NCBI GenBank assembly: GCA_047495785.1
Contig: JBLDXI010000006.1
Coordinates: 1-64,000, forward strand
From: Lepidodermella squamata
Taxonomy: Eukaryota > Animalia > Gastrotricha
Direction: 5' to 3'
Length of the DNA: 64,000 bases
In this document: one piece after another, positions 32,301 to 63,848 of the stretch
Layout: each line of letters begins with the position of its first letter
Numbering within the stretch: the first letter of the stretch is position 1
Notes under the pieces: model-generated
The model's input: only the letters and a program-made list of their open reading frames with translations
Databases searched by the model: none
What the model was told of the DNA's origin: nothing
Position numbers and translations under genes: made by a program

Positions 32301-34698
32301 GTAATCCTCGAAAACGATATCAGTGTCGAACTGTAAATAAAAAAACATTGCTATCAAATACAACCGGCGCCATAAACTGACCCAGCCCTCAGGAATCGGT
32401 AGGTTGATGGAAATGGAGATGTAGATTGATTCGTGCACAACTATTCTGTGTGGAACCTATGAAAAACAACCTATCGGTATCAGCATTTAGCAAGCAACTA
32501 ACTAACGGATCGATCGACAGAGGCGTTGCAACTCGCTTCGTTTTCCGCTAGTGTCGCTGCTTCGTCGTAGTAGTTGGTCTTTTAAGAAGGGTATATGAGA
32601 AAAATCATTTTCAAAGAAATGTTTCTTACAATGTAAGTTCCCGCGGGGCATGGCAGGGTCGAGACTTGACAATTGAAGGTTCCAGGGCCCATACAGAGAA
32701 CTGCCGTAGATCCAGGGCACTGCAGTTCGCAAATGGCACCGTCCAATGTCGCTCCACAGGTGACATCATCGAACGAACCGTCAGACGTCATTCGCATGCA
32801 GTAGTTGGATCCAGAGCCGCATACGCTGTTCGCAAAATTGGGATTGCCAGATACCCAGTTCGAAAAGACGACTTCACGGCCGGGCAAGTCGCCCCAGAAG
32901 AAATCTTGCGACTGTGAACCATTGCCGTTCTGGCCGCCAATCCACATACCATTGCAACCAAACGGCTTGTTAAGATCTGAAAACCAGTTGGTTAGCCAAT
33001 TCAATTGCATCAAATAAGCCTACTCGAGTAAATAGTCGCAGCTGTCTTTTCGATCGTAGTGTCGACTTGAGCGAGGCGAGTGTTCAAACTGGCACACGCT
33101 TGGGCGGCTTGGCTCCATGTTTGGCTGAAGTACAACGGCGCATATTTCCAAGCAGCAGAGCAACCAATAGTGAGCCCTGTTGAGAAGTAATAGAATCTAA
33201 TAATATTCCGGGGCTTTTACAAAAATTACATGGTTGGCATTTTGCGTGGTTCGGGAAAACGAAACCTGCGTCAACCTGAATAAAAACAAATGAAACTTGT
33301 CTAGCACGAATGTCATAGATCTTAGAGTTACCTGGCCAGATGGGCAACTCACGTCGACAGACCTACAACGTTTCGGCGCTCGGCTGATTGGATCAACGCA
33401 GAGTTTAGCCTATATATCAAAACCAGATAATTGACCAAGCTGGGAGGAAAAAAGGAAAACTCACCGGTTTGTTGTCTTCAGCGAGGCATTCGGCGTAGTT
33501 GGTAGCAAAAGTTGTTGCTGAATCATAGATTTTAAGCTGGATTTAAAAGAAACCTGATTATTCTTTTCTATTTAACTGAAAGTTAATTACCCGTGGCGAT
33601 CCTGGAGGGCAGAGGTTGTAGCATCGGTCAGCTGTCGGCATTTCACACAGAACAGCTTTCTAAATGGATAATTAAACGTGAATAAATCTTCGAAAATTCT
33701 ATGATATTTTTTCTCACCCATGAAAGGCAGTTTTCCAAAAAGATGTAGGCACCACGGGAATACTCGGCAGTTTCGTTGTTGGCCAAGCAGCCTGACTCAG
33801 CAAGGCGACACGCCGTGTACTGTCTCGTCGTCTTATCAAAGCACCTGATGTGCGGTTTTCGTTGGACAGGAACACTCACTGAAAGCGAGAAAGTATTAGG
33901 CAGAGCCATGTTAAATTTCAAAAAAAAATCACCTTTTTCCTCCAAACACGTAGCCATATTAATGAAATTCCCTTCATCCTAATTCGAAAACATCCAGTAG
34001 AATTGACGTGATTTGCCTCAGTAAAACAGCTAACCTCGAGAGTTTTAGGGCAAACGCCAAATCGGGACGGGACGCATGTGACGATTTGATAGTTGGAGGA
34101 GCATCGTTTGGCTGGCAATTCCTGAAAGCAATGGCGAGTAATTTGAAAAAACCATTATCTTTCAGATTTTACCGAAAATGTTGGAATGTCGTTCAGGCAA
34201 TCTTCGAAATTGTAGCCCATCAAATCGAAGCCGTGATACTCGTTAAGCTGGAATCACAAAAGTAGAGGTTGGACCATTCATCATCAACGAGCAATCAGGG
34301 CCACCTACCTCAATTTCATTTGCTCGGCAAGGTGTATTTCCAGATCGACACTTGAAAGTTAGTGCGCCGTACTCGTAGCACAGTCTAGCACTCTGGTTGA
34401 ATAGGAAACAGACGATAAATGAGCGATTAAATTCGAAGCTAAATTACTCACTCCTAATTTGCAGTCTTCGTCGTCGGAATAAACTCTGGTGCCCTGTACC
34501 AAAATCGGACTCAAATTAAATGGAATAAATTGATTATCCAACCTGGAACTCGATCAGGTCCTTGCAACCTTTCTTAAGAGTTCGACATTGAACAAAGGTG
34601 TTATCAAATTGCGAATAGCATCGAACAAATTTGAGGCACGAAATTTGCTCGAAAGCAAAGGTGGCTAGTAGTAAAAGGGATATTAAACAGCTACTCAT
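29381..34698 (-). CDS. Cys-module / C-type lectin paralogue C with an internal 1.4-kb tandem duplication (frameshifting if read straight through; may be a pseudogene)
   Basis: MSSCLISLLLLATFAF start; same exon series as B and D; duplication junction reads SGRKLPRKMPTM. Confidence 0.75.
30458..33250. repeat. Tandem duplication 30458-31850 = 31858-33250 with a 7-nt filler AATTTGC
   Basis: ORF track shows identical ORFs offset by exactly 1400 bp; I saw no mismatches by eye. Confidence 0.95.
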
Positions 34699-43119: not shown

Positions 43120-45393
43120 ATGTTTTTTCCTATTTCCGTGGCAATCAGTTTGCTTGCGATCTTCGGAAGGTTAACAACGTTCTCGGCGCCGGCTCCCGAT
43201 TTCTTCAACTCGCCCCCAAAAAATGCGACAAAAACTCTCATAATTCCGAATTTGCTCGGTTACCCAATAACAAACGCATGTAACATAACGTCTTATATGT
43301 TAGCCGATCATGTCAACTCGAGGCTTGACTTTTTGCCCAACTATCTTGTCAAATTTGTTCCTGGCAACAGCCGAGCTGCCAATCAACAACTAATCCAGAT
43401 AATGGAACGGACCAGCTATCCAAGCAACACCTACATCGCTCCTATCATTACGGGGCCTGATGCCACCTGTGAAGAGGTAGCTAGAACCCTTCGGGGTATG
43501 CAAACTATTCTCTACTCGCCAACGTGCGGAGGGCCGATTTTAGTCTCACGCCGGCCTGTCGATTTTAACAACATGTTCTCGACGTCCTCCCCGACCGAAC
43601 GCTACATCTACGCCGGGCTGGAGGTAATGAAAAACATTGGAAAATGGAAAGAGGTCGCTATAGTCTATAGCACGCAATCTCGTAATTTTGAGGTCTTAGC
43701 CAGGTCCTATTTCGACCTGTTTGAGGCTAATGGGATCACCGTCAAACAGTTCATCTACTCCTCCAGCACGCTCAACATATCAACGGACGAATGGACGGCT
43801 TTGCGCGATACTGTTCGAATTATAGCTACCGTACTGCCAGGAAATGAAGATTGTCGTAGATTTCTTTGCTTAGCTTGGCAATATGGCATCAGACCTCCAC
43901 GCTACGCTTTCATTTTATGGAACACGCCCTGCCTGACTAGTTCCATTGACCCAACAACACCGCCCGTCTTTTCGTGGTGTGACCAGGCCATTTTCGATAA
44001 ACAGCTTGAAGGTTCCTTCTCCATAGGTATTTCGGTTAATAGCAGCACCGCGCCAACTTCTTTCGGATACTACGGGCCTGATCTTGATGCTGAACTGGTG
44101 CGAAGGGTGAACAATAAAACCTACGAAGACTATTTCCAGCGCTACGTTTGCCACGACGCTTTGATGGCGACTTTAATAACGCTTGACGAGGCTGAGAAAA
44201 CTTTGAACGCAAACTATTCGCTGACATTGAGCGATTTTGCCGATCCGCGTTACCGCAAACTGGTAAACGTTGTAGTTAACGCAACGGCTGGCTGGGTTGA
44301 TTATTCCGGTCTCCGAACTGGTAGGACTAAGAAAGACACCAACGGCTATGGAAATGAAAATATGTTGATTCTTCAAGCTCAAGGCCGGTTCCAGAGACTT
44401 GTAGTCGAGATTCAATATTTCAGCAAAATGGCGCCAAAAGTCTACGAAGCTAAATATTGGAACACTCCCTATTGGCCGGCGGGAAAGCCTGCCAAAGATC
44501 TTACTCACATAGAAGCTCGGCTACAATACTGCGGCGCTCGAATTTATGGCCCAGCAATAGGTCTAGCCTTAGTCATTTCAATTTCTCAAATTGTCCTTTA
44601 CACGAAATCTAGTAACAGAGAAGTATTTTTCGGAAATTTGAAAAAAATGGTGGTCCTCCTAAGTTGTTTGATTCTGAACGCTTCAGCTGTTTTCTTCGTC
44701 GCTGGTCGCGACTTTGCGATGGAAATCGAGTGCAAACTAATGCCACTTTTGACTGTCATTAGCCTTTCGCCCCTAAATGGACTCATGTTCTCGCAAATGA
44801 TAGCTTACAGCAAGCTAATCAAACTTAAAATAGCAAAATCAGATGTCAAATCTGATCAAAATCCTCTCCGTGCTAAAAAAATTGTTCTCCTCGAAAGTGA
44901 TCCTGTCAAAACTTCAAAAATAATTTCCATGATATGGCTTAGTTCTGTTCTACCCAGCTTGGTCACCCTTGTCGTTTGGCTGCTCTTGGATCCCCCGAAA
45001 TTGTTCTTCAAAAAAGGTCCACTGTTGTTCGATGAAATAGCCGATACCTATTATACAAACGATTTGATCAATTGCAAATCTCCCGATTTTTCTCTCGTTT
45101 GGTTAGTCATCCTGTTGGTTCTACATTTTCTTCAACTGTTGCTAGCGAACTTCTTCTCGCTCGGCATCAATCGACGAAAAATGCCGGCCAACTTGACTTT
45201 TTTGATGAACATGTTCCGCCTGGCGGCTGTTTTCGCCCTAACCTTCGCAGCTGGCAGTGTTTTAGCTGTGATCGTGGTGTCACACGTGCAGACGCCTTGC
45301 ATTGAAAAGGCCATGGTTGCATTTTGCGAACTTATCTATTCGGCTGTAATTGCCCTGGTTCTGTTTTTCCCTGCCAAACAAGGCAGAAACTAA
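43120..45393 (+). CDS. Intronless class C GPCR, GABA-B-receptor-like (Venus flytrap domain + 7TM)
   Basis: Signal peptide; IITGP..CEEVA, FNNMFSTS, KWKEVAIVYS, HDALMA; YWPAGKPAKD linker; seven hydrophobic segments; no Cys-rich domain. Confidence 0.8.
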   Translation: MFFPISVAISLLAIFGRLTTFSAPAPDFFNSPPKNATKTLIIPNLLGYPITNACNITSYMLADHVNSRLDFLPNYLVKFVPGNSRAANQQLIQIMERTSYPSNTYIAPIITGPDATCEEVARTLRGMQTILYSPTCGGPILVSRRPVDFNNMFSTSSPTERYIYAGLEVMKNIGKWKEVAIVYSTQSRNFEVLARSYFDLFEANGITVKQFIYSSSTLNISTDEWTALRDTVRIIATVLPGNEDCRRFLCLAWQYGIRPPRYAFILWNTPCLTSSIDPTTPPVFSWCDQAIFDKQLEGSFSIGISVNSSTAPTSFGYYGPDLDAELVRRVNNKTYEDYFQRYVCHDALMATLITLDEAEKTLNANYSLTLSDFADPRYRKLVNVVVNATAGWVDYSGLRTGRTKKDTNGYGNENMLILQAQGRFQRLVVEIQYFSKMAPKVYEAKYWNTPYWPAGKPAKDLTHIEARLQYCGARIYGPAIGLALVISISQIVLYTKSSNREVFFGNLKKMVVLLSCLILNASAVFFVAGRDFAMEIECKLMPLLTVISLSPLNGLMFSQMIAYSKLIKLKIAKSDVKSDQNPLRAKKIVLLESDPVKTSKIISMIWLSSVLPSLVTLVVWLLLDPPKLFFKKGPLLFDEIADTYYTNDLINCKSPDFSLVWLVILLVLHFLQLLLANFFSLGINRRKMPANLTFLMNMFRLAAVFALTFAAGSVLAVIVVSHVQTPCIEKAMVAFCELIYSAVIALVLFFPAKQGRN

Positions 45394-45781: not shown

Positions 45782-48700
45782 TCACAATTTCGTGCAAGCG
45801 TAATATGCCTCAATTATTTCCGGTGGCGTGAGGGCAACGTCATAAATCATCAAACACGCGGCCGCATCACCCTCTCGAAAATTGTCCATGCCCCAGAAAA
45901 ACCGGCCCATGTGAAAACCATAGCCGTGGTTGGTCGCAGCATTAGCCACAATCTCGTGAAATCTCGGCTGTCCAATCAGGCCGTATTTCGAATAAACTGA
46001 AACGACTGATGTTTCAATTTCAAACGTTACAGCAATAAATTGCCATGGTTCGTCCGTTGGTAGAACGTGGTTACTCAGGACTTGGTTCAACGCAATCAAT
46101 CTCACTGTCTTTTGAGCTGCATTGTACGCTATTCGAAACGTATTTGTATCGTGCTTGCTGATGTAAGCTCGGAAGCCGAAAATTCCGTAAAATCGATCAT
46201 CGTCCAAGTGGCTTGGTTTCAGAAACAAAGAAACCGTGAACGACCTGGACCTCATAGGCCAAGCGTCATCAGGCCGGTAGATCAGGCAAGTTGGGGACTT
46301 GCCCTTTATGAGGCCGAAATTCGGCTTATCCAGCGGCCCAATCCCCAAGCTGGGCGGGCTCTTATCATCACAGCTGAAAGCATCCCGGCCATTACCGGAG
46401 ATATCGAAAGTTCTCAGGGTTAAATCAATGTTGTTCATCGGGTAAAAGGCAACCAAATTGCTGACCCTAGGCCATCGCGATACCGGAATCTCCAGTGTAG
46501 TCGGAATGTTCAACGCCATCGCCGTACAACATTGAGTTGTAGATGTTCCACTTGGCGCGCTTTTGAATCTAGCGAAATGCACTGGCTTGGGATTGATTTC
46601 GAGTGACATCGCAGCATTTGCCATTACAGTGCGTAAAGCTGACCTGCGAGTAGACGTCCTTGCTATTCGTTCCGACGATTCGATGCCAAACCATGAAATT
46701 CGCGTAGCTGTAGTCCACTTAGCAGTCGTTTTCGCTGTTGTTCGTGATTTTGTAACTGGTGCTGATTGAGAAGACGAATCGCCATCAACTTCATGGAACC
46801 CTTGAAAAGTTTCAGTCGGAATCGGTTTTGTCGTTTCAGTAGAAGTAGTAGCTGTAGTGGTCGTAGAGGTCGTAGTGGTACTAGTCGTTATTGTAGTTGT
46901 GGCTGTGGCAGTTAGCGTTGTTTTCGCTGAGGTAGATGTTGGCACTGTTGAAGTCGACGTCGTCCTTTTGCTACTTGTCAGCTTTGTTTTTGAGCAATAT
47001 CCATCAATGGTCCACTCGCCTTCCATGGTACACGTGATCAGACCGGGCCCTACAATATGATAACCACTTTTGCATCGAATCAACCCAGTCGCACCCAAGC
47101 AGCGGCTCGAAATCCTGAAATATCCGTTCGCAATCATAACCATCTCCATTTTCGGGCAAAACAAAACTATCAAGGAAGAATTTAAGTTTTTTTTCCGAAA
47201 TTTTCTGAATTGCACACTCACGCTTTGTCGTATTGTTGTAGTCGTCAAGCGAATTTCCACATAAATCTGGTTTATCGATCGCACATTTGCCCGACTTAAG
47301 AAGAGCAGCGTAAATTGCATGCCGCCCGTTCAATTTCGACCTTTGAAGTGGTAACAGGCCATCGGAATCGTACTTGTTACAATCGACCCCGTATCGCGTT
47401 AGCAGAAGATCGAGAATTCGCACATCGCGATCTATTGCCAAACTCAACAGTGACTTGCCAGTATCATCTTCGTGATTCAGCACTTGTTGCAAGGTGGGTT
47501 TAGTCAACTTAGCTAACATCTCATCTAAAACCTGGACGTCAACCATTGGAAGGGCAGCGTGAAATGGTGTTCGACTATGAACGTCCAAATCTAGCGCATG
47601 AGACTGATTTTTCACGAGAAGAAGTTGTGCCAATTTCCAGTTTTGATTAAAAACAGCTAGATGTAAAACACTGCCACTGGAGGACTTGGACGCGGCTCCG
47701 TTCTTATCGGCATCTAAAATAGCTGCAATAACATCGAAATTTCCGAGTTGGATCGCGTATTCTAAGCAGGTTCGTCCTAGATTGTCCTTCAGCGCAAAGT
47801 CCAAATGATTGCCGAATTTTCGGATAAATTCCGCATTAGTCGCATCAACAGCGATGTGAACTAAACTTTGACCATCGCTATTCTTCAACAAAGGATTAGC
47901 TCGAGCTGTATGGATGAGGTATGAGATGAAACGGGGAGATTTCTTCTCAAGAACAGCGACCATCAGAGGGGTAACACCTTGTATTATCGTTTTGGCATCA
48001 ACATCGTTGAAAATCTTGTTCTTCGACGTTAACAAGTGGTTGAATGTTGAGCCATCTCTTGCTAGATGTAACGCGGTATAGCCCCTTTGCTCAACAGCCG
48101 ATACGTTCGCACTAAATTGTTCACTCAATGTATCAGCTAAGCCTCGAGCATTATTCGAAATGGCGAGTAGAAAAGCTGTGAAGCCTCGATTATCAGCTAT
48201 ATCTATAACATGATCACCTGGACCTGTAACAAACTAGCGATGAATCACTCTGACATAGGTACTATGTAAAGGCTCACCTGATAGAATTTCAATCAGCTCA
48301 TGATCAGTTTTCCTTCTTTCCAACGAATCCTGGCCAAACATATCAGCTCCTCTTGCTAAGGCATGAATCGGAGTCCCTCCGCTGTTATCTCTAACATCAA
48401 CTGCAATGCCCGCTTCGATGAAGTATCTAGCAAAAGTCGGATTCCTCAAATTCGTCGCAAGATGTAGTGGAGTTCCTCGAATCGATCGATCCTGATCATT
48501 CGGGTAGACGCAAGTCGCCTCCCCGAAACCATGATCGGGCGCAGGCAGCATTTCCAAAGCTGTTACGATAAAATCTTTCGAATTCCCGGCAACAGCGTAA
48601 CAAGCCGGGGTTTGACCGGACGCGTCTTGGGAACTTGAGTTGAAAAAGTACCAAAAATCGTTGAGGAAATCTGCAAAATTGTGCTCAGCCGCTAGGTGGC

Positions 48701-49385
48701 TCAATGTTCGGCCGGTTGGATCGCAGCCCGCTACGGAGAGGTCCGGTTGCTTTGCAAGCATGATTTTAACCATGTCCCATCGCTTACTCAGCAGAGCGTA
48801 ATGAATGGCTAGTAAACCATTTGAATCACAATGCTCTAGGGTCGAGTTATCCGTGAATTCTAGCAAGGAAGCTAACGTCTCTTGCTGGACAAAAGGACGA
48901 GGATGTGACGAATTCACGGCGTAAAAAATTGCGGTCCAGTTGTAGAGATACGGATTTTCGATAAAAACCGACGCATTTTTGCTGAGAAGTAGGCCAGTAA
49001 CTTCGGGCCTAGAGTGGTGGGCTGCCATCATAAGGGCAGTGAGACCATTCCGACTTCTGCAATTTATAGGCACATCGTCATGCAGCAAGATTTCGTTGAT
49101 AAAATCAAGCCGTTCCAGCTTAACCGCGAGATGAAGTGGCGTCCATCCTGTTTCATTGAATGATTCTACTACGGAATAGCCTTGCCGTTCAAAGTCGTTT
49201 AAAATTAGACGGAAATTGTTAAAATTATCGTTTTCGATTGATTCGAATATCTCATCCAGCTGCTCTTTGACGAGTGTTGGTTTGTTGCTCGAGATCGATA
49301 CGCAGTTTAGAGTCATGTTACTCGCACAGCTTTGTAAAACGAATGCACCAATGAGTATAATGCTAAAATAAAGCATTTTAACCAT
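45782..49385 (-). CDS. Secreted ankyrin-repeat / sushi (CCP) / Thr-rich mucin / LamG-like protein (introns 48224-48277, 47167-47221)
   Basis: Signal peptide; many GxTPLHLA-type repeats; both introns join in frame; CP...C..GY...G...ITC...GEW...C; poly-Thr; LVAFYPMN...WQFIAVTF...CLMIYDVALT. Confidence 0.8.
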
Positions 49386-49600: not shown

Positions 49601-52600
49601 TTAATAATTAGCTGCAATGATGTATTCCAGTTCTTGAAACGATGGGCGGTCACTCGGTGATTCCAACCAGCATTTTGTCATCACATTCTCGTAGAAAGGC
49701 TCGGGACATTTCCGCGGTTTTTCCAGCACCTTACCAGTCGTTATTCGAACTACCACTGAGGAAGTATCCAATCCTTCATACGGGATCGATTTGCACTCTA
49801 CACGCAATACATTTATTGGAGAAATATAGAGACAGTTAAGTGTTACCTGAAAACACTTCCCATATTGTCACGCCGAAACACCAAACATCGCTTTTCGGGC
49901 CGAATTTCATCTGCTCGATAGCTTCAGGAGGGTACCATCGGATCGGTATCAGCAATTGACCACCACTGTTTTGCAGCTTGTAGTAAACATTATCGGTGTC
50001 GAGGATGCGCGACATTCCGAAATCGCTTATTTTCAAGACGAAATCTTCTGAGACCAGGACGTTCCTGCAAGCAAGGTCTCGGTGGAGGCAGTTTTTCGAC
50101 GAAAGGTAGGCCATGCCACGGCAGATCTGGAGGCAGTAGTCGATAAGCCCCGCTTCAGTCCGGTCATCGTCTGTTTTCTTCAGAAATTGATCCAGGCTGC
50201 CTTTTGCCATGAACGGAGCGACAATGCATGGTTGGCCGTTAATAGCAGCTACTCCAATTAACGGCAAAACATTATGATGAGAGAAATCTTTCATTATAAG
50301 AGCTTCTTTCATGAAATCGGTCAACTTTGTTACAGACCCTGGCTTGACACTCTTGATTGCGATCATCATGCTCGTATTATCGGTGTCTTTGAGGCTGGCT
50401 CGATGAACGGAGCCGAACTGGCCCTCACCAACGTAATCGTGCAATTCGATCCTTCCTGGTTGAATGTTGATCGGTTTGAACAGCTCAATGAGTTCATCTG
50501 CTTGCGGCAAGTCCTTCAAAAGACTGGATAGGTCGGCGATAGCTTCGATATAGTTCGATTCTTTGACGGAATGGTGGTCTAGCGGCATAGTTATTAGCCG
50601 TTTAATCAACTTTTTGGATCTTCTTTTGTGCCAAACCACTCCAATGACAATGAGAATTGCGATAATTGCCAAGACACCAAGAATAATGGCGATCAGAATG
50701 GCTGTTATTGTAAATTTTACTACTACCGATATTTTAGCCTGAGTCTAACCTGTAAAGCTCTGCTTATACGACATAGGTGTTGTTGTGCTTGGTTCTTGCA
50801 GCAGCTCTTCCTTAACTGTCGGAACTGTTGTCACTTCAAGGTCATCCTTTAAGTCCTTTATTTCCTCAATCTGATATAAATTATAGGGACAGGACTGATT
50901 CGCTGGAACAGTAAGACATCCGGCAGTTTGTTTGATTTTTTCACTCAGCGGAAAAATGTTCCTAAACTTGATAGGAAGTCCCTTCTCGCAAGATTGGTTG
51001 AGCTCTCCCAGGAAAATGCCAGCCTTGAACAAAGAGAAGTATACAGTTATAGACGAATTTTTAATGCATACCATAACGAATCTTTTGCTGAGCTGGGTTA
51101 CATAATCCCTTTCAATGAAGAGCAACAAAGTGGCACCGAGCCGCAAATCGCAGGCAGTAATTCTGTCAACCTTCGCTTTGAAGCACAGTACTTCTTCTGC
51201 TGATAGCTGCGAATTATCGGCACTTTTGGAGCAGTTAGATTGCGGTAACAACTTCCCAGTAACATAACGACTTTGACTATTTACACCTACGACATAAGCC
51301 TCATCATTCCATAGGACGTTCTTGTCGCAACAAGATGGCAGGCAAATGCTTCCTGGATTATCGGTGTCGTAAGTCCTCTTGTAACGAGCTACTTTGATAC
51401 CGTAATCTGTTGTCAGCGATGAATTTGCCATATCTATGCATGAAGAAGCGGTTATAATCACATTCTCGGCCAACCAAGCGCCTATGCAGTGCGATGTTAA
51501 GTAGTAGTCTATGAATGGAAAATATTTTCTGATACTGAAGTCTTCTTCATCTTCATCTTCATCATCTTCATCTTCATCATCTTCATCTTCATCATCTTCA
51601 TCTTCATCATCTTCATCTTCATCATCTTCATCTTCATCATCATCTTCATCTTCAAGAAGGTAAGGATGGATATAGCCGCATGTTGATTGATCTATGATGT
51701 ATCGCATTGCATCTTGAACGGCAAACAAGTCTTCCGATGCTAATTTAGCGTCATATATTGACAATCCAGCGATCGCATGACGCTTCGCTGTTGAGTTGAG
51801 AAGAACTCCGTCGGATGAGCCCACTGTGAATCCTGACGACTGAGGCCACCATATATGCGCCAATCCGTTTTTTGGCGGCATTTCAAGCGCGAAAACGAGG
51901 GTAAAATCGTTGAAAACTGTTAGCCAAATGGAATTCGGTTCTGCAGAAAACACAATGCCAATGAAAGTCCATTCCGATACAGGGAATATTCCAGGTGCCG
52001 CAATGATGCAAACACCAGGAAATTCAAAAACTAGCACGTCGGGGTACCTGTACCCTATGCTGACCGAATTCGGTTGGAAACCTAGAATCCTGATATCTTC
52101 CGGGTAATTTCGATCAGGCCGGAAGAAAAACGTTACAGTGAAGCCAGAGTTAGATCGAAGTGGAATCTTGAAATCGTTCACTTCGAAATCGAGATTTTCG
52201 CCACTGATCAACATACCCGCATATTGGAAAAGTTCGGAGCCAGATATGAATTTCTGATAAAGCGATTGAGTTAACAGACGACGAGGGCCGAAGTCATAAG
52301 CACCATGAAACCAAGACAGTGGCCAGAGGCCCACCAATGAGAAAGATCTTGGCATTGTGATTCCTGAGATTGTAGACATATCTATGAGGCGAGGATTAGG
52401 CTGGGATAAAACGCACGTTGACTTGCCGATAAGACAACGATACTATCATTTGATATTAAATCACTCAGCTCCTCTAGAACAGCCTCCTCGCTGAGATTAC
52501 CATTGAAAGGGTACGCTCGTTGGATGTCGCCAGCGAATGTCACGATCACACTGTTGCCAGCGCGCTTTTCCACTCTCGAAATGAACGAATCAGGCGGGCC

Positions 52601-55600
52601 ATATGAGATGCGTTTTAAATGTTGATTCAGCTAAAATTGGTATAAGCATATACTTGCTGTCGATTAAATGGCTCATAGAGGAATAATTAATAGAGGAGTA
52701 GTCACACAAATGACTACTGAGTAATCGGGAAAGTACTTGGTCCTTGACGCGAAATCGTTCATATCTTACACTCTCTATGATCTTATTCCAATTAGTCATA
52801 GTCAGAAGCTCGTTACTTTGATCGTCTAGGTATTGCGCAATGTCGCGTAAAGTCATAGTTCCAATGATTCTCGCTGAGGTAAATAACAAGCAATCGATCA
52901 TTAATCGAATAAAACCAATCCTGAAACATACCCGTTTGGCCCGCCATAAATGCTTCGTTCAAGCGTCGACAGCTGTCAATAATTGAGGCCAATTGATTTT
53001 CGTTGAGGGATACATTATAGGAAGCCAAGCAAGAATATCCCATAGTTACAGCATTATCGGTTCCCTCTGGTTCCTGAAAAAGAGAGTTAAATATCTGCGA
53101 TTGAATATTAAATTTTCTGGTTTTTATTACCAACGCTTTTCGCATAAAAGTACTATGCGCGGCCTTACGCTGCTGTTTTTGCTGTACATAGCCACACATA
53201 CTCCGTGCCTATCACGTTTTTTGGTCACTGCTGTCGAATCACCTTGATTCGTCGATATTTTCTAATTCCATATTTTTCGGCAATGCCAGCGCCATCGGTG
53301 GCGCTTTTTTCCGACGGTCTCTGCCTGGCGTAAGCCCTGTGGCTTATTCCGGTTCCTCTCTGGCGGTGCGAGCCTGCCCGACTTGGGGCGGGCTGCCTTT
53401 CGCTCTGAAGCTGCCGCACACTGGCCTGCTCTGGTGGCTAAGCGGCCGTTGCCTGCCGACCTATTCACGTTTCATGTTGGCCCCGTTTGACCCGGCGCGG
53501 GTCGGTGCTGTTCGGGAGCCGGTGCCGGCCCGCGACCTGGATGAGGCGGGCGGCGGATGGCTGGCTGTCGGTGTGGTGTCGGTTTGGCGGTGGCGGATGG
53601 GCGGCGGGTGGCTTGCCGCATTTCGGCGACCCGTGCGCAGCTGTCTGGCGGCGGATGGCTGGCCGCATCTCGGCGCCTCGACTCGGCCGGCGTTGGCGGC
53701 CATGGACGCTTAGATATTTTTGTACATAATTTTTGTGATCACTTGTTTACTCTGTTATTGATTGCTAACTCGATGCGAAGCCGCCCATGTTTAGCCTGCG
53801 GGCTGATGGGCTGGGAATGTAACGAACCTAGAATAATAAACCACACATTTCTCTCTCTCTGAGGTTACTGTCGTTTTCGATTCCGGTGCTGTTCGTTAGA
53901 ACGCGCACTTCTGATTATTCTCAAACAATTTTTTGCTGCTGTTATTATCGATACGCCAACTTCGTCAGATATTTCAACAACAAAGCTGCTTCAACAACAA
54001 GCTGCCCGTCATCAATTTACTACGACTACGAGCACGTGGTAATCCCATTCATCGATTCAAGCACGTGGCATGGCTACACCACGAATTTCTTCTTCTGCTT
54101 CTTTGGCGACAAGATGACTAAGATGGTCGAACTACGCGGCAAACAAGCTATGTTCGAACTCAACGACTACGATCTTGCTGAAAATTGCGTGAAAAACGGC
54201 CTGATTTGCAAGCCGTTCATGTTACGATTCCGATGGTTTATTGTCAAGCAATCTGATGTTGTTCAATGTTTCAACTGCCAGCGATATGGCCACCTGGCTC
54301 GAAACTGCTCTGATGAGACGAGATGCTTACGATGTGGTCGCAAACACGACGTGAAGACTTGCTTGCGGGGTGTTCGTTGCTGCAATTGTGGTGGCGAGCA
54401 CACCGCGAACTCGAGGGATTGCCCTCTGCGCCGGCCTTCGGCTGGCTGAAACGAAAGTTTCATGGGAAATTGCTATGCAATTTCAAGACGGGTCGGGGGG
54501 TAACTGGGATTTCTAACGAAATCCTAGTTGCTCATCCACTCTAAATTTGGGAAAATTTTTAAGGACGGGATAGTTTTGGTCCCAAGGGGCGGGTTCTGGG
54601 TCTAAGTGGTGACGGCGGGTGGTTAAGTTGGTCCCACTTTGGCTACATGATGAATCCGCTGCCAGGTCCGTCTGTGATCTTCCATCACAAGTGACGCTGT
54701 AGGGGCAAATTTGATAGCCCGATCGGCGCGGCTCTGAGCCAAATTCCCCAGTAAGTTTGGGGGGGGGGGGGGGGGGGGTTTCTGAGGTTACTGTCGATAC
54801 GAACTTCGGTGCGGTTCTATTAGAACGCGCACTTTTGCTATTTTTCGAAAAACAATTTTTCGCTGTTTATTCTCACTGTTTGGCTACATCGCTGGATATT
54901 TCGCTCAATCAATTCGATTACGTCAACATCTACGTCAACATCGATCGACTATCTGCGAGCACGTGGCAACTCTACTATCAATGAATGGCGTCTGGAGGAA
55001 AAAACTCGATGGCGTCTTCACCACAACATATTAACTCATACCCGAACGCTAGCAAGCTGTTTACAGCTATTCCATCGACCCATCAAGGCCTGTTCTCCAA
55101 TATGGATAGACTAACGCGGAGTGCTATCTACAGTATCGTCGAAAGTATCTACATGAATCAGGGCAGTCTGAGTGGCATGGATCTCTTGATTCTCATGCTC
55201 AAGGAAATGGACCTTCGAGGGAGAATCTTTTCCTTCAACGACCGCGATTACGACGACGACAAGCCAGAAACTAACGAATTGGGTACGCAAACCTGCCAAG
55301 ATCGTGCGAACAACACAACGCAGACGATCCTAGAAAATCGGCCCAAGCAAGTGGCGCCGAAGAAGAAGTCTTTTGAAAAGATTATTGTCAAGACCGAACC
55401 GAACTGCGATCGAAAACAACTGTGGTCCAGGATAGTGGCGGCGGCACCGGAGGCTGGTTTCAAGGGCTGCAAGCAGACTTCAGATTCTCTGGAGATACGT
55501 CTCGATTCGAGCGTTCAATCTGCCCAGCTCAGCACTAAACTGGAATCTCTCGGGGCCAAAGTCATGCTGCAAAGACCGACCAAATACCGAATAGTTCTAA

Positions 55601-58513
55601 CAAACTTCGATGCGAATGCCGTCTCGGCGAGCCACATTACGGCTGTCTTTGGCGACAAACTGGCGAAGACGGTTACCCTTCGGGGTGGCCAACTGATGTT
55701 CGAGCTTACTGATTTCGATCTGGCGGAGCGAGCGGTGAAAACTGGTCTAACTGCCAAGCCGTTTCTACTCCGATTCCGATGGTTCGTTGTGAAACCACCT
55801 GATGTGATCCAATGCTACCGCTGCCAACGTTACGGCCACATGGCGCGGAGCTGTTCCGAAGAAGAAAGATGCCTACGATGTGGTCGACCTCACAATGTGA
55901 CGATGTGTGTGCGTGCTGTGAGCTGCTGCAATTGCGGTGGCAAACATGCCGCAAACTCGAGGGAATGCCCTCTGCGCCTGCCTCCGGCGGGCTGAAACAA
56001 CATGCATGTGGGAAATGGTGATTTCGCAAGAAATTGCCATTTCAAGACGGGTCGAGTGGTAACTAGGATTTCTGGGAAATCCTAGTTGCCACTGCTCAAA
56101 ATTGGGGAAAATTCTTAAGAACGGGATAGTTTGGGATTCCAACACGGTGGGGTGGTCCTGGGTGTGGGTGGAGACGGCGGGTGGTTAAGAGGGTCCCACT
56201 TGGCACACATGATGACCCCGCCGGTCCGCACGTGATCTTCAGTCACAGTGACGCTGTAGGGGCGACCTTGATTTGCCCGACCGGCGCGGCTACTGAGCCA
56301 AATGCCCCAGTAGGTTTGGGGGGGGGGGGGGGGGGGGGGGGGGGGAGTTAAGTAATCAAAACTACTGAACAACGAAGACCTCAGCAGCTGAATTTCGAGT
56401 TCTCAATGCTCTTCATCGGGGAAAATAGAAATACTTTACTGCTCCTAGCTCGCATTATCAAGAATTTGACATCCCCTGATCCAAGAGACATGTCGCCAGC
56501 CGCCAGCTGTCAATCAATTTAGCTATTATTTTGGTTAGATATGTTGCATTGAAAGTTGACCGCCATGTAAAGTGCACTTTCAGCATAAGCGCTGCGTTGA
56601 AAGTACACTCTAAACATTGATAGTGCACTTTATAGAGGTTTATTACACTTTGATAGAATAGAAAATTACACTTTGATTTTCTTGCTTGGTTTCCAAATTA
56701 AAAAAAAACTGATTAAAATAACTGAAAATGACGTAGGGAACATTCGGTTTGCTCATTGAAATCATGAGACGTAGCTAGGACGCCGCAGCTGGGTTGTTTA
56801 CGAGAAAAAAGTGTTGGCAGAGATAATTAGGGTCAAAGGTCACTTTTTGAAAATACTGAGATGAATCACCTCATTAAATTTTCGCGCTCTTTTCATCCTT
56901 TTTTTATGTTTCCCATAAAAGATCCCTTGATTCAGGCGCAATCAATCGATATTCAAGCAACACAATCTAAAAAGTGAAATCAACATTAGTTTCGAGCCAT
57001 TAATTTTCGAAATCGATTAATCATGGATGAAACTAAAATCAATGGATGTAATGAAGAAGCTTGCTTTCCAAATTTACTAGAGGGAGTCATTGAAAAAAAT
57101 TCCTAAACATTAAACATTGTTTATCTCAAGTAGTTAGAGCATACACGGAGAATGCTTGTTGTAAATCATGCTGAAAAAGGAGAAAAAACTGAGATTTGAA
57201 AAATCTGACAAAATGAGATGCTGATCAGATCCAGCACATATCTCGATTTTTCATTCCAGTTTCAACCGCCAGTAATTTGGCCGAAAATGAGCAATCAAGT
57301 TCCCGGTGAAAGTCCCATAGCCGAAAGCGTTGAAAATTTCGACTGAAAAACATTTCCTGCTGCATTGTTTAAGAGATGAACTTATCTTGCGTCATTACGC
57401 AACAGATGCAGCATAATCGCGAAGTGAAATAAAACAAATCAATGGAGTAATTCATGCAGCTTGTTTGAGTTGCTTTTTGTCTCAAGAAATTAGTTTGCTA
57501 AGCTCTACATCTCATTGTTCAAGTCTCTCGATCTCTGAGTTCCGACTTGGAACCTGATTCTAGCTTTGTAACCATCGACGCCTACGATTTTTAAAACCTT
57601 TTGAAATTTCAACTTAATATTTTTTAAATTTCAGGGATTAATAAAATAATTATTTTTATTAAACCCTGAACATTTAATTTTTCCAAAAGGGAAATTATCC
57701 AGAATATTCAAGCATGCATAACGACAACACGTCAGTTAGTATGGCGGGATTCAAGCTTCGGCGTCCTAGCTACGTCTCATGATTGAAATATATCTTAATC
57801 GGCTATGGGAAGAAATTGCCTTATACGATACGACATTTAATTACTGTATGAGTTCATACTTTGGTCGAGTAACCTATGGTGAGTTGGTTGAGTGCTGCCT
57901 GCCAAGGTTTCAATCTCTGCGTGTCAAGCGATGCTATCAGTTCAATTTTATAACCTGGCTCAGTGCCTAAATATACGGCAAAGTGCGACTTGTTGTGGCT
58001 GACAATCGCCAGGAAGTGCCATTTACTCGGTTGCCACACGTTCTCCACTTTGGTCGAAACTATTGCACGGCCGTCTGTCGCGCCGATTTCCACACTGAAA
58101 TTACCGAATCGCAATCTTACGTAAAATGAATTGCCGAGGGAGTTTTGTGAATCAATCTCTGTCAACTCGACAATCCCTCTCGGTTGCTTGCCAGTTGTTT
58201 GATATGGGAAGAAAAACAGCGTAAATGCTTGCTGGCGGTTTTCAGAGGAGCGATACTTCAAGAGATACGTCGAAAATTCAAGAAAATAAAAAGTGTAGTC
58301 AGCCCATGATGAGTAGGCGCTATCAAGGTAGCCGAATGGACCTGCTTGTTGCATTACGCATGCCGATTCCGCGTGGCGGGCTTTGATGACAGCTATTGGC
58401 AGATAAGCAATGTTTTCCGTGCCATATTGACGATTATACGGCACCAAGAGATGGGGCGATCCGAAGCAATACACATTTTCGATGATTGTTAGAAATAGCA
58501 CGGGGAGTCGCAT
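49601..58513 (-). CDS. Receptor tyrosine kinase copy 1 (apparently intact): signal - LamG-like - SEA-like - LamG-like - acidic tract - inactive trypsin-like domain - TM - Met/Ron-like kinase; large intron 53074-57859
   Basis: [42 protein letters not shown]; TM followed by HKRR; exon order mirrored by copy 2. Confidence 0.82.
51539..51653 (-). repeat. Coding 15-bp minisatellite giving a (DEDED)n acidic tract
   Basis: Tandem TCATCTTCATCTTCA units in frame; absent from copy 2. Confidence 0.9.
53200..53859 (+). mobile_element. Probable 5'-truncated LINE 3' end (CR1/L2-group-like); left boundary approximate
   Basis: GC-rich frame with SSLAVRACPTWGGLP, resembling the SF..R....WN.LP ORF2 C-terminal motif; 3' hairpin, AATAAA and a (TC)n tail. 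Confidence 0.45.
53858..54778 (+). mobile_element. Gag-only element, unit 1 (internally deleted), structured 3' region and G20 tail
   Basis: Starts TCTGAGGTTACTGTCG like unit 2; three CCHC knuckles in ORF 53886-54449; G-run 54759-54778. Confidence 0.75.
54779..56345 (+). mobile_element. Gag-only element, unit 2, structured 3' region and G28 tail
   Basis: Same 5' and 3' ends as unit 1; complete ORF; G-run 56318-56345; no RT follows. Confidence 0.78.
54985..55995 (+). CDS. Non-LTR ORF1/Gag-like nucleic-acid-binding protein with three zinc knuckles
   Basis: CYRCQRYGHMARSC, CLRCGRPHNVTMC, CCNCGGKHAANSREC (Jockey/I/R1-group ORF1 spacing). Confidence 0.88.
   Translation: MASGGKNSMASSPQHINSYPNASKLFTAIPSTHQGLFSNMDRLTRSAIYSIVESIYMNQGSLSGMDLLILMLKEMDLRGRIFSFNDRDYDDDKPETNELGTQTCQDRANNTTQTILENRPKQVAPKKKSFEKIIVKTEPNCDRKQLWSRIVAAAPEAGFKGCKQTSDSLEIRLDSSVQSAQLSTKLESLGAKVMLQRPTKYRIVLTNFDANAVSASHITAVFGDKLAKTVTLRGGQLMFELTDFDLAERAVKTGLTAKPFLLRFRWFVVKPPDVIQCYRCQRYGHMARSCSEEERCLRCGRPHNVTMCVRAVSCCNCGGKHAANSRECPLRLPPAG
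56763..57781. mobile_element. Non-autonomous P-like DNA transposon
   Basis: TIR CATGAGACGTAGCTAGGACGCCG and its exact reverse complement; 8-bp TSD ATTGAAAT. Confidence 0.93.
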
Positions 58514-58886: not shown

Positions 58887-61800
58887 TTAAAGATAGGCTT
58901 CAATAAATTCTTCCAGTTCCAGAAATGATGGTCGGTCACTCGCTGTCTCCAACCAGCATTTTGTCATCACACTCTCGTAGAATGGCTCGGGACATTTCAA
59001 GGGTTTTTCCAGCACCTTACCAGTCGTAATTCGAACTACCACTGAGGAAGTATCCAGTCCTTCATAAGGGATCGATTTGCACTCTATCACGCGAAATAGT
59101 TATTGGAGTAACATGGAAAGAATATTTATTAAATGTCACCTGAAAATACTTCCCACATCGTAACTCCGAAACACCAAACATCGCTTTTCGGGCCGAACTT
59201 CATCTGCTCGATAGCTTCAGGAGGGTACCAGCGAATCGGTATCACCACCGCTGTTTTGCAACTTGTAGTAAACATTATCCGGGTCGAGGATGCGCGACAT
59301 TCCGAAATCGCTGATTTTCAAGACGAAATCGTCTGAGACTAGAACATTCCTGCAAGCGAGGTCTCGGTGGAGGCAGTTTTTCGACGAAAGGTAGGCCATG
59401 CCACGGCAGATCTGGAGGCAGTAGTCGATAAGCCCCGCTTCAGTCCGGTCATCGTCTGTTTTCTTCAGAAATTGATCCAGGCTGCCTTTTGCCATGAACG
59501 GAGCGACAATGCATGGTTGGCCGTTAATAGCAGCTACTCCAATCAGAGGCAGAACATTATGATGGGAGAAATCTTTCATTATAAGGGCTTCCCTTAGAAA
59601 ATCAGTCATTTTGGATACAGACCCTGGTTTGACACTTTTGATTGCGATCATAATTTCGCTGTTGCTATCAAAACCTTTAAGACTGGCTCGATGAACGGAA
59701 CCGAACTGGCCCTCCCAGACGTAATCGTGCAGTTCGATCCTCCCTGGTTGAATGTTGATCGGTTGGAACTGTTCAATTAGTTCATCAGCCTGTGGCAAGT
59801 CCTTCAGAAGGCTGGATAGATCGGCGATTGCTTCTATGTAGTTTGAAGCATTTGCAGGATTGGAATTCAATGTCATGCCGACGAACCGTTTTACGAAAGC
59901 TTTAGACCTCCACCTGTAGAAAATAACCGCCGCTACGACCAGTATAGCGATTACGGCGACGACACTCAAAATGATCGCGACAAGCGCAACTACTCGGAGA
60001 AACAATAATAACCTATGACAAAGCAAAAAAGTTTTACAAACCTGTGTAATCCTGTTGACCCAAACTTGGCGTTGTGGCTCCAGATTCCACCAGAGACTTT
60101 GATTTGATTTGATTTGATTGTGATTTTATTTGATTTAGGCCATTTTTTGATGATTTGATTTATTGATGATTTGATTTAGAAAATTTCAGGATGATTTGAT
60201 TTGATTTAAATTTAGCCCTCTTGATTTACTGCTGATTTATAAAAATCAGAACTCTCGGAATTTCCCTGTTACTAAACATGAGAAATTATATTTGCCTTGA
60301 AAACAACTGTTTTCCAAAGCCTGGAGCTATTCATCCCCTTTCATACTCATTCAACCAAAGCCAAGCTTGAAATTTGAAAGAACCCCCAGAAATTTACCAT
60401 GATACTCATGTTTCCCTATGCGAAAGATTTGATTTGATTTGATTTAAACGAGCCTGATGATTTGATTTGATTGATTTACTATCGATTTTTTGGGGATTTG
60501 ATTTGAAATGATTGATTTACTGAATAAATCAAATCAAATCAAATCAAAGTCACTGGATTCCACCACTTTTTCTTCAGTTACTCCGCTCGTTACTCCACCA
60601 GTGATCGTCTCAGTTTCATTTGCCCACTCGTAGATGTAAGGACACGGCTGATTTGCCGGAACACTCATGCAACCAGCAGTTGTTTTGATCCTCTCGCTCA
60701 TCGGAAGGATGTTTCGAAATTTTATGGGAACTCCCGTTTCGCAAGTTTGATTGACATCTTCAAGAAATATCCCAGCCTGATCATAAAATAAAATTAGACG
60801 TAATACCTTATCACTATTTCTTTAATTTCCTTTACCAAAACGTATCTTTTTCCAAGCTGTGTTATATTGTCGCTATCGATCGTCAACAGCAAAGCGGAAC
60901 CAGGAAGCAAATCGCAAGGTGAGATGTTCTTATACTTGGTTTGAAAGCACAGCGCCGATGCTTCTGTTTTCAGCGACTCTTTGATCGTTTCCAAACAGTT
61001 TGATTGTGGTATCAATGTACCAGAAATGTAGCCATAATTTGCTTTACGCCCACGTAGCCCGACGATATAAGCAGGATCGTTCCACAGAATGTTTTCGTGG
61101 CAGCAAGTCGGTAAGCAAATGCTATTCGAGTCCTTGAACGGTTTACCAAACCGGGATATGGCGATAGAGTCGAATGTTTCATAGGCCTGCGAAGAATTGA
61201 GCGTTTTTTCGCAAGAGGAACTTGTTACCAAAATTCTATCAGACAGCAAAATTCCTATGCAATTCTCGGCTGTATAAACTATGAAAGGGAACTGATCGTT
61301 TTTCGCATCGGTTGGCTTTGTTACAGGCGAAGCTAAAGGTTTCGTGGTTAGGGATATGCCGCAACTTTTTCGAGATATAAAGTAACGCATTGCATCTTGA
61401 ACAGAGAGCAAATCTTGCCAAGTCAACCTGCCGCCATAAATCGACAATGCTGCTATTGCATGATGCACCATTGTCCAGTTTGAGGAAAATCCGTAAGATG
61501 AGCCAACAGTAAACCCGGACGATTGAGACCACCACTTTTCCGCTGGAGAATCACTTGGGGGTCGTTCTGCGGCAAAAACTAATGTGAAATTGTTGAAAAC
61601 TGTCAGCCACGGTTCATTTGGCGCTGCGGAGAACACAATGCCAACAAAGGTCCATTCCGCTATAGGAAAAATCCCAGGTACCGTGATGACTACGTCGGGT
61701 AATTTGAGAACAGTGCATCAGGATGCTGATATCCGAAGCTGATCGAATTCGGGTGAAATTCAAGGATACCAATTTGTTCTGAGAAAAATTCATTGCGTTG

Positions 61801-63848
61801 GTAGAAGAAAGACACAGTAAGCCCCGAGGTAGAAAGTAAAGGTATTTTGAAATCAGCTACTTCAAATACTTCGCTGTTGAACCACACGCCAGCGTCTTTG
61901 AAGAGGCCGCGGAACATAAAATTTGACTTTACGACCAACTGCTTGCTTGGCAGGCGGCGAGGACCGAAATCATATAGGCCATGTTCATTCGAAATCGGCC
62001 AGAAGCCAACTAGCGAGAAAGATCTGGGCATTGACACCGCTGAAAGGTTTTTTAATACCATAAGAGGTACGTCCGTGATAACTTTTCCATCTTACCTTGG
62101 GTTGCCGAAAATAATGCGATGTTCTTATTCGCGATCAAATCGCTCAATTCTTCCAGTACACTCTCCTCGCTGCGATTAGCATTGAAAGGATATGCTCGCT
62201 GGATAACACTCGCAAACGTTGCTAGAGAAGTGTTAGGAGAGACCAACTCCAATTTTGTAATGAGCGAATTCGGCCTTCCGTAGGAGACGTTTTTCAGATT
62301 TTCATTGAGCTAGATGAAATTTTAGAAAAGAATCAGTAAAACAGAGAGCTTTTCTTGTCTGAATTCATCAAAAATTTCAAATTAATTATATTCTGAGATT
62401 TGAGATTTCAAATATATCGTTAGCGTCGTTGAATATATCGGATTAAGGCTTGTTTCAAGGTGGCAGGTGACGAGTAAAAAGCCTTTCGACTTGTCTCTTC
62501 ACTCACGTTAATAAGGCCGTTTTTTTACTTTCAATTCGAAATGGATTTAAACAAGACTAAATGAGTTATTCAATAACGCTAACGATATTAATTCATTAGA
62601 ATACGAATTTAATTTATTTAAAATTGAATTTTCTCCTCTCATGGCTATAGACGATTACCATACAGAAGGAAGGTCACTGCATTCTGTGGCGGTAACGTTA
62701 CATCATGGTATTTGCTCGTGGCCTTACGTGTTCTATCATACTCGTTGTCATGGACAGCTCAATGTTTTGAAAGGTTGGATCTTGCGGCCAAGTGATGCCG
62801 TTGAAAATCATCGTTCCAACAATTCTCACTGTAATTGATAAATGTCGCATTTCACTCATGGCGGTATGAAGTTCATGAGACCTGTTTGCTTCGACAAGAA
62901 TGCATCGTTTAGGCCGCGACAGCTGTCGACAAGAGAGGCTAATAGTTGCTCACTTAGTGACACGTTATAGCAGGCCAAGCAAGAAAAGCCTTCAGTTATG
63001 CCGCTGTTAGCAACCAACTCCGACTGAAAAGGATGGATAGGCATTGGACGGAACGTTATAATAACCTCTGATTCTCGGACTGTTTGGTTTAGGCAAGGCT
63101 CATTATACTACTCTGGTTTCGGGGTGTAACTGTTTGCATTCGACTTTCTTTGGCTTCACCTATTTTGCGTGTAATCACTTACCTCATCACCAGGACCCCA
63201 CTCATGGAAGCCAATTATCAGTGCGTAATCCAGTATAGGTCGAGGAGGCCATTCTGGCCTGTTCAACGCCTGTGCGTTGAGAGTGACTAGCTTCCGCAGT
63301 TCGTAAATTGGCTCAACACCAATGAATACGGAAAAGTGAGACTTGTTTTGGCTGACAATGGCCAGAAAGTGCCATTTTCTCGGGTGCCACGCATTTTTAA
63401 CTGTGGCCGACAAGCGTTGGTTCGAGCCATGCGCGCCAATTTCTGCGCTAAAATTGCCAACGTTCAGCTTGAAATAGATCGTGAAATCCTTTTCTCGAAA
63501 GGAGAGAATCCCTCTTGCCACGCCTCCTGATTGAGACGCGTATGTGAAGAAAAACAGTGACACGGTTTGCTGGCGGTCGAATTCGAAGAGGCGATAGTTC
63601 AAGTCATAAGTAGATAGCATACTAGAAGCTGAGGAATAAGCACTTTCGAGGTAACCAAACGGACCTGCTTGTTGCATGACGCCAGCTGAGGCAGCGTGCG
63701 AGTATTCAGTCACAACGTTTGACACGTTGGCCATGTTTCTCGTGCCGTATTGGCGATTGTACGGCACCAGAAGCAAGGGCTTGCCGAAGCTGGATACCGT
63801 GTCGATGAATGTCGTAGTCAAAATAGAACTGATGAGAAATCGCGTCAT
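58887..63848 (-). pseudogene. Receptor tyrosine kinase copy 2, disabled
   Basis: Collinear with copy 1 but has a frameshift near 61710, a MITE in the juxtamembrane exon, G-to-W in the glycine loop (YVWEGQFG) and an 8-nt deletion near 59244 that frameshifts the kinase. Confidence 0.85.
60090..60555. mobile_element. hAT-like MITE with (GATTT)n arms inserted in a coding exon
   Basis: CAGAGACTTTGATTT.../...AAATCAAAGTCACTG; 8-bp TSD GATTCCAC. Confidence 0.93.

Follow-up and report, generated by a model that had tools for sequence, protein, structure and literature searches.

A lineage-specific receptor tyrosine kinase gene in the gastrotrich Lepidodermella squamata with a candidate degenerate S1A protease module next to the membrane

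A stretch of 64,000 nucleotides of contig JBLDXI010000006.1 from Lepidodermella squamata (hereafter the window) carries on its minus strand, from 58513 to 49601, an eight-exon gene, gene A, with a predicted product of ~1,249 amino acids (aa). Taken as a whole, gene A is best explained as a lineage-specific type I receptor tyrosine kinase (RTK) whose cysteine-rich juxtamembrane module is most likely of degenerate S1A protease descent, a reading that we hold with moderate confidence. From the N-terminus, the product would comprise a signal peptide, two jelly-roll-like (ConA/LamG-like) blocks flanking an alpha/beta-looking block of ~105 aa, a recently expanded acidic linker, the juxtamembrane module of ~175 aa, a stalk and a single transmembrane (TM) helix, followed in the cytoplasm by a tyrosine kinase that is predicted to be catalytically competent, with a YY pair in the activation loop and hardly any tail. 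A collinear tandem paralogue, gene B, lies at 58887–63848 on the same strand.

The juxtamembrane module

A previous interpretation made from the letters of the window (the sequence-only reading) had recognized a trypsin-fold pattern just outside the membrane in a series of motifs (FPFI…CIGAWLAENVIITASSC, SICLP, LLPQSNC, LCF, ACDLRLGATLL and GIF…SC..G.P..FRNI), all of which are indeed present there on the minus strand. Comparison was made with an S1A profile of 101 sequences, derived from 120 bacterial S1A loci that had been fetched by the pattern CQGDSGGP. Alignment of the paired A and B sequences (alignments A1 and A3) to this profile with hhalign gave one local match of 28–34 columns (Prob 70–84%, P 8e-6 to 4e-5), in a register that places FPF on FPF, the first cysteine on C42 and TASSC on TAAHC. 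This N-terminal block scored 38.3 against a maximum of 21.6 in 400 column shuffles (0/400 reached the observed value; null 12.1 ± 2.1; Gumbel P 2e-7), while 12 control domains taken from the window scored 11–17 against the same profile. Searching with the profile by hmmsearch returned values of 5.9e-6 for A and 4.3e-4 for B.

Weaker alignments continue collinearly downstream, with LLPQSNC at C168, VLCF at C182, ACDLRLGA at C191–G197 and PIKFRNI…KI at PGVYtrv…WI. The cysteine spacings equal those of S1A proteases for both C42–C58 (16) and C182–C191 (11), and all 11 cysteines of the module are kept between A and B. Of the S1A positions concerned, C42 and C58 lie inside the significant alignment, C168, C182 and C191 fall on the non-significant collinear alignments, and C220 is a candidate only.

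The loss of the catalytic His and Ser in both paralogues, already part of the sequence-only reading, is confirmed at the aligned positions: His57 is replaced by Ser in A and B, and Ser195 by Leu (A) or Pro (B). In place of Asp194 stands Arg in A and Leu in B, the IVGG activation N-terminus is absent, and the counterpart of Asp102 is placed uncertainly. If S1A-derived, the module would be a heavily eroded pseudoprotease with a predicted fold of the two-barrel chymotrypsin type. It would have kept the disulfide block of the ‘histidine loop’ and cysteines with the spacing of C168–C182 and C191, and would have lost His57, Ser195, Asp194, the IVGG N-terminus and ~33 residues of the first barrel. 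With its catalytic residues and activation N-terminus gone, such a module cannot be an enzyme and would therefore serve as a binding or dimerisation scaffold.

A substantial set of results weighs against S1A descent. A hidden Markov model (HMM) test of the trypsin assignment came back negative, as Pfam Trypsin (PF00089) gave no match in the exon pieces of A and B even at E<=10, and a phmmer search of the PDB with the module gave no match either. When the middle and C-terminal thirds were each restricted to the matching parts of the S1A profile, hhalign returned P values of 0.2–0.3, no better than shuffles (0.2–0.7 over all the weaker alignments), and the exon-6 piece, left unrestricted, aligns elsewhere on the profile. 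Thus the N-terminal part of the proposed trypsin-fold pattern stands far beyond chance, whereas its middle and C-terminal motifs occur in the expected register but score like shuffled sequence. Global alignment requires a gap of ~33 columns from C58 to the region of Asp102, which would take out two strands of barrel 1. A profile-based search of the PDB returned eight weak matches, and although four of these are azurocidin and trypsins in the same register, their E of ~1.5 is not significant database-wide. Modelling of the module by AlphaFold2, from an alignment two sequences deep, yielded a mean predicted local distance difference test (pLDDT) score of 31.9 with no residue above 50. The second LamG-like block, run as a control, gave 31.9 likewise, and since this control failed in the same way, the low pLDDT reflects the depth of the alignment (two sequences) rather than the fold.

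Alternatively, the module could be a lineage-specific cysteine-rich domain unrelated to proteases, in which the 28–34-residue resemblance is convergent or due to chance and the rest is cysteine-driven pareidolia; the gene would still be a lineage-specific RTK. Such an origin agrees with the restriction of significance to one short block, the other two thirds behaving as shuffled sequence, with the missing Pfam and PDB sequence matches, and with the size of the module, which is ~20 residues shorter than the smallest template trypsins and needs the gap described above. Moreover, lineage-specific RTKs are known to carry new ectodomain modules of ~170 aa that contain cysteines (PMC4342544). It accounts poorly, however, for a block score so far above both its own null and the 12 control domains, and for the rest of the module, whose best weak alignments fall in the exact expected order and register and bring three more cysteines onto S1A disulfide columns. 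We regard an unrelated domain as a serious but unlikely alternative, and descent from an S1A protease as the best single explanation of the module and a reasonably probable one.

What the module might do is a separate matter. The sequence-only reading had suggested a tethered-ligand receptor, or a decoy for proteases or their inhibitors. Spelled out, the dead protease would act on the ectodomain of its own receptor, or would sense proteases, serpins or other inhibitors and convert their binding into kinase activation. The HGF beta-chain binds the Sema domain of Met (Stamos et al. 2004, as cited in PMC6374515), and the analogy with it is the sole basis of this proposal. Non-catalytic S1A homologues do act as binding proteins, again a point of analogy only, and the module is under purifying selection (see below). 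A ligand of this type would, however, need a partner domain, and neither Sema nor any other recognizable domain that could play that part was found by Pfam (E<=10); the residues aligned with the oxyanion hole and S1 region differ between A and B; and no sequence feature sets a sensor or ligand apart from a generic binding or dimerisation role. A tethered-ligand or protease-sensing function therefore appears improbable, and a general role in binding or dimerisation would be the simpler expectation for an S1A-derived module.

Gene model and integrity of gene A

All eight exons of gene A are open, GT/AG is present at every junction and the phases are compatible; exon lengths total 1,249 codons. 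Exon order and phases are the same in gene B wherever both were read. Exon 1 (57860–58513) contains the start codon, a signal-peptide-like N-terminus and most of ConA/LamG-like block 1; it ends at a GTATGA donor after 57860 (phase 0) and is 51% identical to exon 1 of B. Intron 1 (53074–57859) spans 4.8 kb, compared with ~160 nt in B. Exon 2 (52932–53073), for which both acceptor and donor were read, completes LamG-like block 1 (…SCLASYNVSLNENQL…) and is homologous to 63023–62882 of B. The ~105-aa middle block is divided between exon 3 (52770–52873; phase 1 in and phase 0 out, as in B) and exon 4 (52417–52630; 58% identity to B), the latter containing the sequence GNSVIV.

Exon 5 (51072–52381) encodes LamG-like block 2 (~51680–52381), an acidic D/E run and the first 154 aa of the protease-like module (51072–51533). 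It is separated from exon 6 by an in-frame GT…AG intron of only 48 nt (51024–51071), which lies inside the module; at the equivalent position B has an intron that carries stop codons. The 544-aa open reading frame (ORF) read earlier runs across this intron, so that 16 residues of the ‘protease’ block as then read are intronic. Exon 6 (50750–51023) supplies the C-terminal part of the module (AGIFLGELNQSC…PIKFRNI…TAGC…CPY) and a stalk of ~55 aa, with 71% identity to B over the first 48 codons. The TM helix (~50630–50701), the juxtamembrane region and the tyrosine kinase N-lobe through the activation loop are encoded by exon 7 (49847–50701), and exon 8 (49601–49797) provides the end of the kinase domain and the stop codon, with virtually no C-terminal tail. 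The earlier statement that a TM segment and a kinase directly follow the protease-like motifs thus holds on the minus strand. Intron sizes of 48–60 nt are found in the window.

The acidic run of exon 5 (~51541–51654) consists of a 15-nt tandem repeat present in 6.7 copies at 98% match; it occurs in gene A and is absent from B, and marks a very recent expansion, in frame, of an extracellular linker.

The general features of a receptor tyrosine kinase are all found in gene A, namely a hydrophobic N-terminus, a TM segment followed by HKRRSKK, and a match to PF07714 with the catalytic motifs. The gene model thereby supports one type I RTK gene with an unusual ectodomain. It could be objected that gene A is not a single functional gene, and that the ectodomain and TM-kinase exons belong to separate transcripts or to an unexpressed, decaying copy. 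The 4.8-kb, retroelement-bearing first intron, the very recent repeat expansion within the coding sequence and the broken state of the adjacent paralogue could be cited to this effect. Decay or separate transcripts would, however, be difficult to square with exons that are all open and in fitting phases, with the identical exon order in B, with a TM exon that has neither an upstream ATG nor a signal peptide of its own, and with a ratio of non-synonymous to synonymous divergence (dN/dS) below 1 between A and B wherever it can be estimated. We consider a non-functional or split gene A highly improbable, and a single type I RTK gene is assumed in what follows.

Intron 1 of gene A also contains two related gag-like zf-CCHC ORFs on the plus strand (53886–54449 and 54985–55995), a GC-rich stretch (~53260–53860) and a 28-nt poly-G run (56318–56345). 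No reverse-transcriptase ORF was seen within this intron.

The kinase domain

The kinase is the part of the product with the clearest affinity. Pfam PK_Tyr_Ser-Thr (PF07714) matches exon 7 at 4.9e-66 and exon 8 at 1.1e-10, and the G-loop, AIK lysine, HRDLACRN, DFG, YY pair, PIRWYPPE and CW…RP are all present in gene A. At the head of the PDB matches stand two chains that each contain two kinase domains, with summed scores; the best single-domain matches are Met (7e-49) and, close behind, Eph (9e-46). A metagenome scan with the kinase retrieved distant tyrosine kinases and nothing closer, none of them exceeding 45% identity across most of the domain.

Previously the kinase had been described as Met/Ron-like and intact. 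It is intact in gene A, and Met is the top single-domain match in the PDB, but membership of the Met family does not follow from this. The Sema domain is the hallmark of Met RTKs (PMC6374515), and no Pfam match to Sema, PSI or IPT (TIG) domains was obtained in the exon pieces of gene A down to E<=10. The stop codon lies only a few residues past the kinase match, and because the protein ends there it has no Met-type docking tail. Since the resemblance to Met is confined to the kinase sequence, with Sema, PSI, IPT and docking tail all missing, gene A is not a member of the Met family. Signalling would presumably follow the ordinary RTK route, with ligand-driven dimerisation and subsequent trans-phosphorylation of the activation-loop tyrosines.

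The other ectodomain blocks

Two LamG/ConA-like domains had been proposed upstream of the module. Both blocks draw Laminin_G_3 (PF13385), but below its cut-off of 27.6 bits (14.5 bits, E 0.04, for block 2 of A; 15.2 bits, E 0.025, for block 1 of B), and both end in a typical ‘…S(I/Y)Y(D/N)..L’ strand. PDB profile searches of the LamG-like blocks gave no significant match, and similarity was not significant either between the two blocks or between each of them and the neighbouring Sushi/LamG-like ORF. The LamG/ConA-like assignment of both blocks is accordingly suggestive only.

The middle block encoded by exons 3 and 4 has a plausible beta-alpha-beta-beta-alpha-beta pattern, and its GNSVIV sequence had been likened to the G|SVVV cleavage site of a SEA domain. 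In this motif Asn, not Ser, follows the Gly (G-N-S-V-I-V), and B reads S-P-N-T-S-L-A at the same place. The middle-block exons gave no Pfam match to SEA (PF01390) at E<=10 and no PDB profile match. With a motif that is non-canonical and not conserved in B, and no match to the SEA HMM, neither a SEA-like domain nor SEA autoproteolysis is supported.

Gene B and the divergence of the two paralogues

Gene B is collinear with A and carries the module, in agreement with the earlier mention of two paralogues; it is, however, frameshifted twice, and the description of the kinase as intact holds for gene A only. Near 59245, in the activation loop of the kinase, 8 nt are deleted, and near 61700–61710 LamG-like block 2 has an indel of 1 nt; the remaining pieces are still open. 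Unless the frameshifts are assembly errors, gene B has the look of a copy that died recently; given two frameshifts, one of them in the activation loop, it is probably a pseudogene. In B the intron between exon 6 and the TM exon (60098–60560) is packed with short repeats of the TTTGA/GATTT type, whereas its counterpart in gene A is 48 nt long.

Divergence between the paralogues differs markedly along their length. The ectodomain pieces are 43–71% identical with saturated dS (1.1 to >1.9), whereas the kinase exons (49601–50701 in A, 58887–60026 in B) are 83–91% identical with a dS of 0.3–0.6. A kinase dS so far below that of the ectodomain suggests that the 3' half was homogenised by gene conversion or arose by a partial duplication later than that of the ectodomain. 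In the ectodomain pieces with estimable dS, dN/dS is 0.15–0.44, and the ectodomain has thus been under purifying selection.

Novelty of the ectodomain

The sequence-only reading had proposed a non-standard class of RTK, its novelty to be checked against databases, and the database searches bear this out for the ectodomain. A full HMMER scan of 1.84e9 representative proteins with alignment A1 of the protease-like module found 0 relatives. Word-index protein searches returned nothing for LamG-like block 2 or for the module, whether queried as a single sequence or, at E<=10, as alignment A1, and a metagenome scan with the exon-6 alignment found no relative. Among all exon pieces of A and B searched with Pfam down to E<=10, the kinase alone was significant, and sequence and profile searches of the PDB with all ectodomain blocks gave nothing significant. 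Novelty of the ectodomain at the database level, with no detectable relatives, is therefore supported.

Searches of the literature turned up no RTK whose ectodomain is trypsin-like, and the word ‘Trypsin’ is absent from the main text of two surveys of holozoan tyrosine kinases (PMC4342544 and PMC8662651). According to these surveys, each holozoan clade has diversified its RTK ectodomains on its own, and new domains that carry cysteines have appeared in the process. If its module is of S1A origin, gene A would be the first RTK with a catalytically dead S1A domain as its membrane-proximal ectodomain, a pseudoprotease recruited as a sensing or dimerising element within an ectodomain for which, as a whole, public protein sequences offer no detectable relative; the chances that this claim in its full form is right or wrong seem to us evenly balanced.

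What defines an RTK family is its ectodomain, and novel combinations illustrate how domain shuffling gives rise to signalling receptors. If the S1A link is true, the pairing of a pseudoprotease with a tyrosine kinase would be a new combination, in which the receptor itself bears the type of dead-protease module that is carried by HGF, the ligand of Met. The interest of the gene rests mainly on this link: lineage-specific RTKs as such are well known, and gene A has no bearing on a long-standing open question. Should the link fail, the gene would still be a clear case of an RTK that evolves fast and is restricted to one clade, with a dying tandem copy, and useful for studies of receptor birth and death.

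Comparison with known systems

The closest parallels to the module are the non-catalytic S1A homologues, including the HGF and MSP beta-chains, azurocidin (heparin-binding protein), haptoglobin and the insect clip-domain serine protease homologues, with which it has in common a histidine-loop block with C42–C58 and the loss of triad residues. One of the weak PDB profile matches of the module is azurocidin (1fy1), in the same register. These homologues serve as binding modules and not as enzymes, a likeness that would extend to gene A if the role suggested above is correct. They are, however, secreted and readily matched by the Trypsin HMM, whereas the module of gene A is tethered beside a TM helix and a kinase and has no Trypsin match; it also differs in the ~33 missing residues of barrel 1 and in extra cysteines (ICLPxCC, and two in the stalk).

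Similarity to the type II transmembrane serine proteases, which combine SEA and trypsin domains, lies in the membrane anchorage of a possibly S1A-derived extracellular domain. The predicted topology of gene A is the opposite one (type I, with the module next to the membrane), its module would be inactive, a SEA domain is not detectable, and the place of the short tail is taken by a cytoplasmic kinase. With Met and Ron, gene A shares the YY pair of the activation loop and a kinase that is nearest to Met among solved structures, but it has neither the Sema-PSI-IPT ectodomain nor the bidentate docking tail, and Eph kinases score nearly as well. As a type of gene it also resembles the lineage-specific RTKs of choanoflagellates, filastereans, ichthyosporeans, sponges and nematodes, in which a conserved tyrosine kinase is likewise joined to a fast-evolving, clade-restricted ectodomain and tandem duplication occurs; no described family with the ectodomain of gene A was found among them.

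Other features of the window

Next to gene A lie two ankyrin-repeat ORFs on the minus strand (47004–48128 and 48234–49385), the second with a signal-peptide-like N-terminus, an ORF with Sushi, Thr-rich and LamG-looking regions (45782–47320, minus strand) and a single-exon class-C-like G-protein-coupled receptor (ANF_receptor; 43120–45393, plus strand). An array of C-type lectin domain ORFs occupies 6682–38861 on the minus strand; two of its members, each of 143 aa (31182–31613 and 32582–33013), are 100% identical, which indicates a very recent tandem duplication. Retroelement ORFs are also present in the window. The short introns, the lectin array, the single-exon receptor, the ankyrin and retroelement ORFs and the distant kinase speak against a human source and would suit an aquatic invertebrate or a unicellular relative of animals; four ORFs of the window, looked up exactly, were absent from the protein collection. 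At its beginning, a chromodomain-plus-integrase ORF (262–1473) adjoins an ORF with a clear TBP domain (1911–2690; PF00352, 2.7e-24), an unusual placement of a TATA-binding-protein-like gene next to a chromovirus-type integrase (262–2690).

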